Of a stretch of 64,000 nt of DNA, positions 33,601-51,600 are shown in pieces (position 1 is the first letter of the stretch; the number at the start of each line of letters is the position of its first letter). Source of the DNA: Macrostomum lignano. Taxonomy: Eukaryota. The stretch is from assembly GCA_002269645.1 (NCBI GenBank), contig NIVC01002590.1, forward strand, positions 1-64,000. The letters are read 5' to 3'. The notes beneath the pieces are model-generated. The model saw only the letters and a program-made list of their open reading frames with translations. It was not told the DNA's origin and searched no databases. The position numbers and the translations under genes were made by a program.

Positions 33601-36600
33601 CAACAGTATCTGACCCCAAAGCCAACAGTATCTGACCCCAAAGCCAACAGTATCTGACCCCAAAGCCAACAGTATCTGACCCCAAACCCAACAGTATCTG
33701 ACCCCAAAGCCAACAGTATCTGACCCCAAAGCCAACAGTATCTGACCCCAAACCCAACAGTATCTGACCCCAAAGCCAACAGTATCTGACCCCAAAGCCA
33801 ACAGTATCTGACCCCAAAGCCAACAGTATCTGACCCCAAACCCAACAGTATCTGACCCCAAAGCCAACAGTATCTGACCCCAAAGCCAACAGTATCTGAC
33901 CCCAAACCCAACAGTATCTGACCCCAAAGCCAACAATCTCTTTAATCAATCAGTTTCCCCCAACCCCCAGCAGCTCACCGCCAGCTCCTCGTCGGTGCAC
34001 TCCTGAAACGGCGGTCGCGACGCCCCGACGTCAGCAGCCACCGCAGCCAGCGGCACCACCCGGTGGCTGAGCAGGAAGCGAAATCCGTAGAGCAGGCCGC
34101 CAGGCTGCCGGTGCCACAGGTGAACAGCCAGCAGCTGGATGATCCGCACCGAGTCAACGCTGGCCAGCTGCTCGCTCAGGCTGGCCCCGGTGAGATCGCT
34201 GAGCCGGCTGACGCCTTCGTCCCATTTGTCTTCGCCGTGCAGGGCTCGAAGATGCAACAGGTGGAGAAACATGTGGGGCACCACGCCTCTGAGGGATTGG
34301 GCGGCCAGAGTTGGCAAATTTCAAATTGGCTGCAATACCTGTCAGAGCACTAAGATGTGTCAGAGCAATAAGATGTGTCAGAGCAATAAGATGTGTCAGA
34401 GCAATAAGATGTGTCAGAGCAATAAGATGTGTCAGAGCACTAAGATGTGTCAGAGCACTAAGATGTGTCAGAGCACTAAGATGTGTCAGAGCAATAAGAT
34501 GTGTCAGATGCCAAGATGTGTCAGATGCCAAGATGTGTCAGATGCCAAGATGTGTCGGACGCCAAGATGTGTCAGATGCCAAGATGTGTCAGACGCCAAG
34601 ATGTGTCAGATGTCAAGATGTTCAGACGCCTAGATGTGTCAGACGCCTAGATGCGTCAGGGTCGCCAAAGGTTTCAGGTTCACCATAACTAGAATGTGTC
34701 AGGAGCGCCCAATGTGTCAGGTTCACCATAACTAGAATGTGTCAGGAGCGCCAAATGTGTCAGGTTCACCATAACTAGAATTTGTCAGGAGCGCCAAATG
34801 TTCGCCAAATGTCAGGTTCACCATGTTTCAGAGGCGTCAAAATGCTCAAAAAGCGGACACTAAAGAGCGCATGCGACAAGAGCAGTTACTAACCTGGCCC
34901 GCAGCTGGGCAACAATTCCAGGCTGGTCGTCCACTCCAAGCAGTTCCAGCGCAACCATGTTGAAGTCGGAGCACTCCAGGAAAAGCGCCCGGCAGAGCGC
35001 CGGCTCCGCTATGCGCGCCATGACGGCCCGCTGGGTCAGGCCGAACACTGAGAGCGCTGAGTAGAACTTGGGCAGCTGAGCCTCGTCCGCGCCGCCGACT
35101 CTGGCCGATGATGACGCGGCGGCCATCGACGCCGAGACCAATGCGCCGCCGGAGGCTTGAACAGTCCGCTGCGAGGGCACCAGGGCGCGCAGGAACTGCT
35201 CAGCCAGGAGCCAGCGAACTGCCGACACGGCCGCGTCGCCCGACAGGCCGCGCCGTCGTAGAAGATCGCGCCCGAAATGGCGCGCCAGAGCTAGGGCACG
35301 CTGATGATCGAAGCCGGCTACGGACAGCAGCACCAGCAACAGCAAGATGCGGGGCACGCGGGCGGCCGGCGCCGACCTGGGCGTTGTTGGGACTGGCTAG
35401 GAATTCTGGGATTCCCTGCACTCTCCCTACACTATCTGCACTCTCCTCCCTACACTATCTCTGCACTCTTCCTACATTATCTCTGCACTCTCCCTACATT
35501 ATCTCTGCACTATTCTCCCTACACTATATCTGCACTCTCACTACATTATCTCTGCACTCTCCCTACACTATCTGTGCACTCTCCCTACACTATCTCTGCA
35601 CTCTCCCTACACTATCTCTGCACTCTCCCTACACTATCTCTGCACTCTCCCTACATTATCTCTGCACTCTCCCTACACTATCTCTGCACTCTCCCTACAT
35701 TATCTCTGCACTCTCCCTACACTATCTCTGCACTCTCCCTACATTATCTCTGCACTCTCCCTACACTATCTCTGCACTCTCCCTACACTATCTCTGTGTG
35801 GTGTCTGGCCTGTTGAGTGCTCTTGCACTTTTTGAGTTGTTTTTGCGTGCGCCCTAGGCGGCCATCCCCAGACCAGTTCTGGCTGGTTGGGGGGGGGGGG
35901 GCGCTCGGCCCAGCTTGAGTCTTTCCCCGCGGCGGCCACTGATTGGCTGGGCTTGTGTTTTTGTGTTTTTCTTTTCTGGCCCCCAGTCAATCGATCTGCT
36001 CGGTGGGCACGCTGATTGGCTGAGGGGTCGTCTCTTTTGTTTGGCGTCTCTCTCTCTCTCGCGCTGTCTGCCCCTCTACCCTGTTAAGTGGTATATAGTG
36101 CTCAAGCCTGGCCCAGCCAGCTCCCCGCTCTCCGCCCCGTGCCAGCTCTCCAAACTAAACTAGCGATACTCAAGCGAGCCGTGTCTATACGGTCTCTTAC
36201 TGCGAGGACTCAATTGATTGCGAGCAAATAAAGCGGACAGGTGGTAGCGATATTCGAACGGGCTCCAAGCTTCTGGCACCGGTAAGACCCCGAGTTTATT
36301 CGCTTCTTTAGCTTTTCCGAGGCCTTGCCGTAGCAGTGGTTCCATAGCTAGAGCGTCATCACGCTTGTGACCACTGCAGCACAGCAGCGTTGTATATTGA
36401 GTATTATTGTAGTACTGTACCGGTTACTTTATATAGTGTGTACAACCTACAGTATCGAAACTAGAAGCACTCGAGAGTGTCACCACACCTCGAGCCGCAG
36501 CGTGAACTCTGAGTGTCACAACACCAGAGGGATCGACCCATTATCGCAGAGCGTCGCCACGCCTGCTCGTATCCATAAAAGTACAGGCAGAGCGCCACTA

Positions 36601-48600: not shown

Positions 48601-51600
48601 GCTGATGGGTACATTTGGATCTCCGACGACGAGCAAAGCGAGCAGGCAGCAGACTGCACCTCGGAAGACAATGAGGAGGAAGCCATGCAGATAGATGTCC
48701 CAGGATTCAACGAGATAGTGCCCCATTACGTCTCGACGGTGATTTGGGGCGATGGAAATTTGTTGGCAATAGACGATGCATTGAGGCTCCGTCAGCAGCT
48801 GAGGAAGTACATCCTGGCAGGTCAGCAGGAGAGAATCGAGTCGGTGCTCACTTCAATGACGCGTCTGTACCTGGATGCGCGGCAAGAGCCCAGAAGCGCG
48901 CTCTCGGTGGTACTGCTGCAGGTGTTGCGCTTCATTCGCAGAGACATCTCGCAGGTGAAGCGACAGGGAGCTAGCCGTCGTTTCTGGTGTAGACGGAACT
49001 TCGATTCGTTCGTTCAGCAGCTCCGCTTCGAGCTCATCCCGCTGTTCAGCCTTCGTCGTCACGAGATGTTGTGGGAGGTCCTCGCCAGCTGCGTCGGTCT
49101 GCCAGGACTCCGGGATCGCTAGGGTGTCCAGTCCCTCTGGTACCGTATTATTCGTTTATCCCTACCGTATCAATTTTCTTACTGTACTGTACTCGTTTTT
49201 TGTGCGCTGCTGGTGTCAGTTACGGTGAGGTTAAGGAGGCGAGGGCGGATGGCCTAGGGGGACATAAGGTGCTCAGACGGCTACAGCGCCGGCCGGCTCG
49301 GCGCGCCACCGGCCAACTTCGTGCGCCAGTCAGCAGCGCCCCGCCAGCTCCGGCCAACTTCCGACTCCATAAATTCTTAACACTCCCCCTGTATTATAAT
49401 ACTGAAAACATGGCCTCTCATTTTGATTGATTTCCAATCGCAGAGCTTCAAAAGTCAGCAGACCCGCAAGGCACTCACAGCCCCAGCTGATAGCAGGCAA
49501 AGATGAGCCCCTCAGAGTGAAACAGTCCAACAATCGCCATGTTCTCCAGCGTGTCCAAAGCGTTGGTCAGCACCGGCTCCCACTGCTCCGAGCCGCGGTG
49601 CTGCCCTGCGAGAGCCGACAGCACAGCGGACGCCTCCAGCTGAGTCTGGAAGCTGTCATCCTCGCCCAGCAGCCCCAGCAGGCATTCGACCAGATCGGTC
49701 AGCCGTTTTGCGTCCGGCAGCGGTGGGCTCGCCGAGTGGCTGGCCAAGGCGCGCAGACAGGCCAGGCCGCCGATGCGGACCGGGGGCGGGGCCCGAAACC
49801 GCACCGTAGTTGGCATTAGAAGCTCTTGGCACTGGGCCAAGGATGCGGCAAGAGCCGCGTCCGCCGCTGCCAATTGGGAAGTGATCAGCCTGGGTCGTTT
49901 CGGGTGCAGCGAATCCTCTTCGCTGGACGGCGGCGGCTCTTCCAGGGTGGCAAAGTCAAAGGTAAACAGCGGGAGTAACTATCACTATGTTTTGATTTAA
50001 TAATGCCGCGTCATGTAATTAGTAACCATTGATAAAAAACAAGCGTAAATGCCTACTACAGCCAGGGATAAGTAGTGTACAACGCGCATAAAAACAATTC
50101 AACCAGATTATTATCTACCGTAGCTTTTTTCGCAAGTTCGACACCGCAGTTGCAGACAGGCCGCTAGGCCGAACTCGGGGTTGGTTTGGACAGTTTTGCT
50201 CGAACTTGAGTCAGCGTGTCGCTGTGTTACAGCTGGATTTGAGCTGCCTGAGAAACTGTAGCGCAGCTCTGCGGTGCCGGACTCAACGCAGATCAGAGCT
50301 GGCATGGATACCAGATGGTGGCGGGTGGAATCGCGGGACAGCAGGGCCCTGCGAGAACAATTAGTAAGCATGTGTAGAGTATAGTAATTTCATAACTAGG
50401 GATAATGGCTAGGGGATAAGAGGTAAAAGGCAGGAGCTAAGAGATAGGACATTGGTGCTTAGATAATGGCTAAGGGATACAAGTTTAAATAAAATGATTC
50501 GAACGTAGTCACGAAAAGCCAGGGCTCATGGACAATTGCTAGTGGCTAAGGGACAATAGCCAGGGGATAAGGGACAATAGCCAGGGGATAAGGGACAATA
50601 GCTAGGGGATAAGGGACGATGGTCAACCCTAGAAAATCCCCAGCCCTCACTTTATCAGCTTGACGGCCCCGGCGTTCTCCCGGCCCAGCCGGAAGGCCGC
50701 ATGCGGCAGCCGAACTGCCAGACAGTCGCGCAGCAGCTCCAAGTCATCGGCTGTCGAGCCGGTCGCGGCAGCCGCAGCCGCCGCTCCCTGCCGGCCCTCG
50801 GGCCCGAGCAGCACGGCGTCCAGCACGGAGGTGCGCCACAACGGGCAGAAATTTCCGGGCAGGTGGACCACGCAGTCCACCAGGCTGGTGTAGAAAATGC
50901 GCCGTGCGGAGCGCGGGCAGCGGACGGCGTCGTCAGCGGCGGCGGCTCCTGAGGCGCCGTTGATCTCGAAAACGCGAGCCAAGCCGCGCACAGTGGCCTC
51001 CTCGTTGCGCATGCGCACCATGTCGCGAATGTTGGCTGGCTGGGCGGACTGCTGGATTGGGGAAGAAAATGCTCATGAGGTAGGTGAGAAAATACCCATG
51101 ACGTGGGTGAGAAAATACCCATGACGTAGGTGAGAAAATAACCATGACGTAGGTGAGAAAATATCCATGACGTGGGTGAGAAAATACCTGAGAAAATAAT
51201 AGTTCTCCGTTGAGATACTCCCATATAGAACGTGAGAGACAGTACCCCTACTGCCCGGTACACGCCCCGGATGGTCTGATAGGCTGGGGAGTGGGGTGGA
51301 TATCGCCACCCCGATTCTACGAGTTTGCGAGATTGTAAGAGTTTTGACTACACAGCAAATACTGTCTCTAGCTCAGTTACTCAAATACCCTACAGTAGAG
51401 TGAGAAAATACCCCTATTGTAGGATGAGAAAATACCCATATTGTAGGATGAGAAAATACCCCTATTGTAGAATGAGAAAATACCGTTAGAGTATGAGAGA
51501 TACTACCCCTAAAGCAGGTGAGAGAATACCCACAAAAAGTGAGATGATAGATGATAGTAGGGTGAGAAAATACCCATGGAATGAAAGAGTCTCCTTACAG

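Follow-up and report, generated by a model that had tools for sequence, protein, structure and literature searches.

Retroviruses and errantiviruses express env from a spliced subgenomic mRNA, polyomavirus T antigens are viral J-domain proteins, and the class C (type III) J-domain proteins serve here as a comparison group. The present analysis concerns a 13.4-kb insert in a 64,000-nt stretch of DNA from Macrostomum lignano (contig NIVC01002590.1, positions 1 to 64,000; referred to below as the window). This insert lies antisense within an intron of the ATR gene and is very probably a decayed Ty3/gypsy-type long terminal repeat (LTR) retroelement whose own third gene encodes a J-domain protein. 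LTR retrotransposons with additional open reading frames (ORFs) are already known from plants and bdelloid rotifers (PMC7264820, PMC5408684) and resemble the insert in having an extra sense ORF between pol and the 3' LTR that is inherited with a Ty3/gypsy-type element; the difference is that the extra ORF here encodes an Hsp40-type J domain and a private C-terminal domain. Cargo consisting of a J-domain co-chaperone would be new in kind. Literature searches that combined LTR retrotransposons with J or DnaJ domains yielded no match on an element-encoded J-domain protein, and a recent survey of M. lignano LTR elements (PMC12801592) does not mention a J-domain ORF. The survey describes elements of the same host and superfamily (Ty3/Mdg4) that carry heat-shock elements (HSF-binding sites) in their LTRs, and the two systems are alike in the exploitation of the heat-shock response or of chaperones, whereas the LTR-like region of the window has no heat-shock element of the GAAnnTTC type.

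The J gene was examined for its relatives and their neighbors. The C-terminal 178 aa of the J protein were used as the query of an exhaustive HMMER search of 1.84 billion representative proteins; it detected only five relatives, none of which has a host-gene name. The best match, P0002, is a fused M. lignano gene model whose first ~500 residues comprise protease and integrase parts that are 82 to 97% identical to the pol pieces of the window. A J paralogue follows directly after these pol parts, with 81% identity in the J domain and ~61% in the C-terminal part; its flanks and divergence show P0002 to be a second locus. Two Logan contigs, L002 and L003, also contain an integrase C-terminal ORF (Pfam Integrase_p58_C), a spacer and then a J ORF, and show 67 to 74% nucleotide identity to the window integrase. 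A J ORF was thus found downstream of a Ty3/gypsy integrase in four independent sequences or groups (window, P0002, L002 and L003), and in all copies with upstream sequence the same integrase precedes J at 245 to 396 nt and does not vary in orientation (spacers of 396 nt in the window, 324 nt in L002 and 245 nt in L003). As the integrase-spacer-J order recurs in these four, the J gene was assigned as the third gene of a retroelement lineage, and we conclude that retroelements did not land in a host-like J gene. A preliminary description of this DNA had proposed that the J gene moved in a compact insert of ~1.6 kb, with the retroelement nested inside. Mobility of the J gene is borne out by the present results, but its vehicle is the Ty3/gypsy element that had been taken as nested, and the recurrent order contradicts the compact insert.

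The copies of the J ORF differ in their state of preservation. Intact ORFs are present in L001, L003, P0007 and P0005, while those of the window, L002 and L004 (a JGI contig with another J copy) are broken, by a frameshift in the case of the window and L004. L001, a third Logan contig, and L002 come from two sequencing runs and share 97% nucleotide identity, so that near-identical intact and broken copies exist, which fits the behavior of a repeat family, that is, of a transposon. Alignment of L002:851-1128 with L001:367-600 revealed insertions of ~48 nt in total that break the frame inside the L002 J domain. Across lineages, nonsynonymous divergence (pN, 0.29 to 0.50) is well below a saturated synonymous divergence (pS, 0.75 to 0.87), and hence the ORF has been kept by selection. 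This pattern indicates long-term purifying constraint on the J ORF while it was attached to the element. Other searches for relatives were negative: a word-index homologue search with the joined conceptual J protein (the two reading frames were joined solely as a protein search query) returned nothing, although HMMER relatives exist that this index missed; an exact look-up of the two J reading frames of the window matched no contig; and the J-family alignment, when run against metagenome and viral contigs, detected nothing.

The class of the element was determined from the pol remnants (Table 1). Pfam matches were obtained for RVT_1 (E = 1e-37), RT_RNaseH, rve (E = 6e-15) and Integrase_p58_C, and the best PDB match of the reverse transcriptase (RT) was the Ty3 RT (4ol8, E = 8e-57). 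The order of RT, RNase H and integrase is that of Ty3/gypsy elements (Metaviridae), with an RT of the Ty3 type. Upstream of RT, the parts detected were the C-half of a protease and a gag-like ORF. The reading frames of the successive pol pieces are 0/2/0/0/0/2/0, with at least three frameshifts and at least two in-frame stops. Pol is decayed in this way, a foreign segment of 7.2 kb has been inserted, the J ORF has a frameshift, and most of gag, the N-half of the protease and most of the 3' LTR are gone; the window copy is a dead, inactive remnant.

The J frame of the window ends after 109 codons, and the C-terminal 210 aa run on in the +1 frame (from 48466/48490 to 49125). Comparison with intact homologues placed the frameshift at ~48455 to 48470, between the J domain and the C-terminal part. 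An intronless J-domain ORF had been described previously; the presence of a J domain with the HPD motif was confirmed (Pfam DnaJ, E = 1.4e-18, covering aa 2 to 64), but the ORF is not continuous. J domains with HPD are likewise present in P0007, P0005, P0002 and L004. PDB J domains were matched down to E = 2.6e-14, the closest solved structures being those of DNAJB8, DNAJB6 and DNAJB2, and neither a glycine/phenylalanine-rich (G/F) region nor a zinc-finger region was detected in the protein. These features, together with the N-terminal position of the J domain, resemble those of class C proteins, from which the window gene differs in being carried by a retroelement and in having a C-terminal domain confined to the small J family, outside which no relatives of this helical domain were detectable. 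An AlphaFold2 (AF2) model from a four-sequence alignment indicated a helical bundle over the last 120 residues (90 to 210; pLDDT of about 90) and a disordered acidic linker. When the C-terminal model was compared with the PDB and BFVD by Foldseek, nothing scored better than E = 0.5; the C-terminus had been described as unrecognized before. A motif of hydrophobic residues followed by Ser/Asp/Glu was noted by eye in the acidic linker (48610 to 48640 in the window; also in P0007, P0002, P0005 and L004). Its forms are ISDDE (window), EISDEE (P0007), ITISDSDEE (P0005) and LISDDDE, and they resemble a SUMO-interaction motif.

At the left end, a promoter with two CCAAT boxes and a TATA box and a splice donor at 36281/36282 had been described, and both are present. 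The regulatory motifs of this region were compared with those of the L002 region that lies past the purine tract downstream of J, with P values from 5,000 dinucleotide shuffles. The 11-mer CTGATTGGCTG occurs twice in the L002 region with at most one mismatch (P = 0.0002 for two or more occurrences), and the best match of an 18-mer around CCCTAGG is 16/18 between the two regions (P = 0.01). The order of motifs (CCTAGG, boxes, T-run, TATA) is the same in both. Because these motifs are common to it and to the L002 region, the left region was read as an LTR, extending from 35806 to ~36239, and the donor at 36281 as that of a leader; this reading rests on motifs and not on an alignment of the whole region. 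Position 35806 is probably the correct left boundary. The TGG-initiated stretch lies where a primer-binding site would be expected; no tRNA was found to match it, and none was called in the window.

At the right end, the sequence from the J stop to 49249 aligned with the 3' untranslated region (UTR) and purine tract of L002 (z = 3.7; 0/500 shuffles), with the purine tract located 99 nt past the stop in the window and 105 nt past it in L002. Beyond 49255, no significant similarity to either the left region or L002 was found, and it appears that only a stump of the 3' LTR is left. The searches agreed with the preliminary description in that the insert has no terminal inverted repeat (TIR) and no poly-A tail: the best local alignment between inverted insert ends scored 21, compared with a null value of 20.4 ± 2.2, so that the 13.4 kb as a whole does not have the ends of a TIR transposon, and no long direct repeat was present in the insert. 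Neither LTR pairs, TIRs nor further copies were found within the window. At the left junction TGGTGTC is directly followed by TGGCCT, and at the right junction TGGTGTC is followed by 32 nt (AGTTAC and the purine tract) and then by TGGCCT. Three readings of these junctions remain: a true TGGTGTC duplication with a chance match of TGGCCT, a polypurine tract and truncated LTR with a chance match of the 7-mer, or an LTR that starts at TGGTGTC and has a 32-nt indel. All three place the right boundary within 49210 to 49255, and none yields an integrase-type duplication. A 5-bp TGGCC duplication (35806-35810 and 49411-49415) with TG..CA ends was considered and dropped as a chance match, the LTRs that it implies being unlike each other.

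Several observations weigh against the reading of the insert as one decayed Ty3/gypsy-type element. There was no significant similarity between 35797-36300 and 49126-49480, and thus no pair of LTRs; no integrase-type target-site duplication of 4 to 6 bp was found, the 3' end being truncated; and the purine tract is imperfect, with 21 purines in 26 positions. Motifs and 3' UTR are shared with L002; when the 3' region of L002 was aligned by Smith-Waterman to each end of the insert, neither alignment was significant (z about 0), and significance was reached in motif-level tests only. The gag-like fragment was called by eye only and has no Pfam match and no database homologue. The nested 7.2-kb segment ends 5 nt before 44361, the point at which homology to pol sets in abruptly, and the N-half of the protease is absent; therefore the left (LTR-gag) and right (pol-J) parts may derive from two related elements. 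Under this alternative, LTR, leader and gag fragment on the left came from one insertion or subfamily and pol, J and 3' end on the right from another; the two were joined by recombination, by deletion or by the 7.2-kb insertion, and the leader donor and J acceptor of the window would never have worked together. The unlikeness of the two insert ends, the loss of most of gag and the want of a matching duplication agree with such a chimera as well as the abrupt start of pol does, but features of the J lineage are present at both ends (the left has the boxes, and the right has TGGCCT, the purine tract and the 3' UTR), and the facts are also explained if one element underwent an internal deletion and had its 3' LTR truncated. 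We consider a chimeric origin unlikely, though the most credible of the alternatives; it would alter the history of the window copy and not the nature of the J gene.

The remaining alternatives would separate the J gene from the retroelement. One of them, a two-exon J cassette of ~1.6 kb that moved as a unit and produced a 7-bp target-site duplication, with the retroelement and other repeats arriving later in its intron, gains from the presence of promoter, donor and acceptor and from the two copies of TGGTGTC (35799-35805 and 49211-49217), which are present as described and flank 35806-49210 exactly. The weight of the 7-mer depends on the boundaries that are assumed. With the left end fixed at 35806, a match within the 3' 130 to 350 nt has a chance of only ~1 to 2% by our own arithmetic, but with both ends free, 23 to 77% of shuffles give at least one such match, so that the earlier estimate of roughly 15% was too low. 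Seven bases is also an atypical length for a Ty3/gypsy duplication, and the right copy lies inside element-like sequence: this copy and the bases that follow it, up to TGGCCT, can be aligned to L002 in its 3' UTR and purine tract. A target-site duplication is accordingly not supported. The promoter motifs shared with L002, the lack of TIR and poly-A tail and, above all, the recurrence of integrase, spacer and J in P0002, L002 and L003, by which the retroelement is no later guest, make this cassette very unlikely. Retroposition of an mRNA, as a processed retrogene, was rejected: a poly-A tail is absent, promoter and "intron" are present and the right repeat is located in an element-like 3' UTR; the mobile unit is a retroelement and not an mRNA copy. 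It could also be argued that the J proteins belong to the host, as a gene family that may have been domesticated from an element and merely tends to adjoin retroelement remnants, since the ORF is under purifying selection across lineages and is intact in P0007 and P0005. Against this, every copy with upstream sequence has the same integrase, in one orientation and at 245 to 396 nt, L001 and L002 are a near-identical pair of intact and broken copies, the copies in the window and L004 are frameshifted, and the only five relatives detected among 1.84 billion representatives have no host-gene name; this origin, too, is very unlikely.

If the insert is a decayed Ty3/gypsy-type element, then the "promoter plus non-coding exon" would be the 5' LTR and leader, and the "intron" would be gag-pol, split afterwards by the unrelated 7.2-kb insertion. 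The third gene would be expressed through the acceptor that abuts the J ATG. This acceptor (TTGCAG/ATG at 48221/48222) opens the J frame, as previously described, and a YAG is found directly before the J ATG in the window, L001 and L003, with ctctag 6 nt before the ATG in L004. The J mRNA may thus be derived from a full-length transcript via a conserved acceptor. The leader donor at 36281 may be joined to it in cis, in the manner of retroviral env, or a spliced leader may be added to it by trans-splicing; at the level of sequence, use of these sites is supported by the conserved YAG/ATG and the 36281 donor. Spliced-leader trans-splicing is common in M. lignano (PMC5730564). A third option is an internal promoter in the spacer, where 47882 to 47973 contains 2.6 copies of a 35-nt repeat whose unit has a CCAAT and a CRE-like ATGCGTCA; these repeats could act as a promoter or enhancer for the J ORF.

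The arrangement resembles that of env in errantiviruses and retroviruses (PMC13524379), which is likewise a gene after integrase with a leader donor and an acceptor just before the ORF. In contrast to env, the predicted J product lacks a signal peptide and any transmembrane or fusion-protein features and appears to be soluble and co-chaperone-like, and trans-splicing of a spliced leader is an alternative in M. lignano (PMC5730564). By analogy with polyomavirus T antigens, a mobile or viral genome would encode its own HPD-containing J domain to harness host Hsp70, while the rest of the protein and the type of genome are unrelated and no similarity in sequence or fold extends outside the J domain. 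The C-terminal domain would bind a client, and the J domain would bring host Hsp70 to this client, with a presumed benefit for the element. An extension of this proposal, which we hold to be speculative and improbable, is that over deep divergence the lineage has kept its own Hsp70-recruiting adaptor, consisting of the J domain, a SUMO-interaction-like acidic motif ([VIY]x[IW][IT]SD[DE][DE]) and a private helical domain, that would be trans-spliced in an operon-like manner from genomic RNA and would direct Hsp70 either to the element's own particles, for assembly or uncoating, or to SUMO-dependent silencing complexes as a counter-defense. Some DNA viruses harness Hsp70 by means of J domains, to which this gene would be the counterpart in a retroelement. 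The gene has a further link to its host in that other M. lignano LTR elements exploit the heat-shock response (PMC12801592). As transgenesis and RNA interference are available in M. lignano, a chaperone role in retroelement replication or escape from silencing is directly testable.

Table 1. Features of the insert and of the surrounding ATR intron, in window coordinates (a slash within a motif marks a splice junction)
Feature	Position	Strand	Basis or remark
ATR exon downstream of intron	34893-35372	-	Acceptor cccag/G at ~35373, in frame with 49478 donor
22-nt tandem array of ATR intron	35416-35796		TRF; starts 43 nt from ATR acceptor, ends 2 nt before left TGGTGTC
Left TGGTGTC	35799-35805	+	Directly before LTR-like region; candidate host flank or first LTR bases
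LTR-like promoter region	35806-36239	+	Starts TGGCCT, ends ..ACA; putative 3' limit
Motifs of LTR-like region	35853; 35939 and 36012; 36092; 36227		CCTAGG; CTGATTGGCTG boxes (reverse CCAAT); TATATAG; AATAAA
TGG-initiated stretch	36242-36259	+	Candidate, from sequence, at expected primer-binding-site place
Leader splice donor CACCG/GTAAGAC	36276-36287	+	Putative; exon end 36281
gag-like N-terminal fragment, ~85 aa	36911-37163	+	ORF; recognized by eye
Nested unclassified 7.2-kb segment	37164-44356	+	CCGGA-rich inverted subterminal motifs at 37164-37318 and 44091-44347
ORFs of nested segment	37770-38513; 38456-40369; 40764-41654		38456-40369 has one in-frame stop
pol remnants	44361-47825	+	Pfam, Ty3 RT match, tblastn with P0002, reading frames
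Protease C-half	44364-44567	+	
RT	44576-45952	+	
RNase H	45996-46616	+	
Integrase core	46686-47162	+	
Integrase C-terminal/SH3-like part	47211-47825	+	
Integrase-to-J spacer	47826-48221	+	Stops in all frames; ends gtattgcag/ATG
J-domain reading frame	48222-48548	+	HPD at WHPDK; out of frame past ~codon 80; stop 48549-48551
+1 frame, C-terminal part	48466-49125	+	Conserved PPPGVEVP motif, acidic linker with ISDDE, C-terminal helical domain; stop 49123-49125
Element 3' UTR, including right TGGTGTC (49211-49217)	49126-49223	+	Aligns with L002
Purine-rich tract GGTGAGGTTAAGGAGGCGAGGGCGGA	49224-49249	+	21/26 purines; candidate polypurine tract
TGGCCT	49250-49255	+	Same as first 6 nt of left LTR-like region; read as stump of lost 3' LTR
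ATR exon upstream of intron	49479-49960	-	5' limit approximate; strong donor CT/GTGAGT at 49478/49477
Tetranucleotide arrays	2614-3131; 14579-15108; 16708-17249; 54864-54990		

The segment nested between the gag-like fragment and pol is probably a DNA transposon. The sequence ACTTGGC is present at both of its edges. Its ORFs had no Pfam or PDB sequence match at accepted thresholds. The longest, at 38456-40369, is a 637-codon frame with one stop in which transposase-like motifs were noted by eye; a CACTA/EnSpm-like transposase label was considered on this resemblance and is not claimed, the Pfam and PDB searches being empty. The ORF at 37770-38513 is acidic and composed of 48-nt repeats. A weak Pfam match that fell under the curated cut-off, to the HROB OB-fold (PF15072, E = 0.014), was obtained for the plus-strand ORF at 40764-41654, which may encode an OB-fold protein of the nested segment.

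The identity of the host DNA was examined with a query built from the two exons that flank the insert. A single protein was matched, UniRef A0A1I8FEW4 ("FAT domain-containing protein", M. lignano), and long stretches of it are identical to the ATR exons of the window. On the strength of this identity, the window was assigned to M. lignano, with the N-terminal half of ATR on its minus strand. The public model of this ATR fragment (P0001, which is A0A1I8FEW4) switches frame repeatedly relative to window positions 30680 to 49781; such switches are consistent with indel errors of an older assembly, and because of them P0001 is unusable for deciding splice sites. Two donors were compared on sequence. 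The donor CT/GTGAGT at 49478 is strong, resembles those of neighboring introns and joins the acceptor at ~35372 in frame, whereas CC/GTAACT at 49224 is weak and demands an additional 164-nt exon that is arginine-rich and junk-like. Position 49224, moreover, falls within the stretch that aligns with the L002 3' UTR and purine tract. The donor at 49478 is more likely to be the true one.

The preliminary description had argued that excision of the 13.4 kb would place the 22-nt array about 15 nt from the ATR donor, as in neighboring introns. The arithmetic holds for the weak donor at 49224; as 49478 is the likelier donor, the argument is weak. Several arrays in neighboring introns do start roughly 10 to 40 nt past the donor, but in the adjacent intron (34340-34801) this distance is ~90 nt. 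Any effect of the dead insert on ATR beyond a longer intron is unlikely.

A scan of the whole window with Rfam and ARAGORN called nothing. Neither program called positions 30084 to 30153 (minus strand), which lie beside an 18-nt array and, with GGTTAGAGCGTCGGACTC...GGGAGTTCGATTCTCGC as the plus-strand sequence, look like a tRNA 3' half; this sequence may be a fragment of a tRNA-derived short interspersed nuclear element. LTR retrotransposons make up ~21% and simple or tandem repeats ~15% of the M. lignano genome (PMC5730564). Nearly all ATR introns in the window have their own long tandem array, with a unit of 14 to 46 nt, a length of up to 2.7 kb and 81 to 99% matches (for example, 7900-8516, 11185-12658, 24149-25162, 25737-27365, 29186-30083, 32612-33935, 52308-53264, 55467-56270 and 56564-59236), and the repeat unit differs from array to array; literature searches on such intronic arrays in Macrostomum yielded nothing of use. 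Tetranucleotide arrays of (CAGA)n, (GACA)n and (ATAG)n, 127 to 542 bp in length and with 95 to 100% matches, are also present inside the span of the ATR gene.

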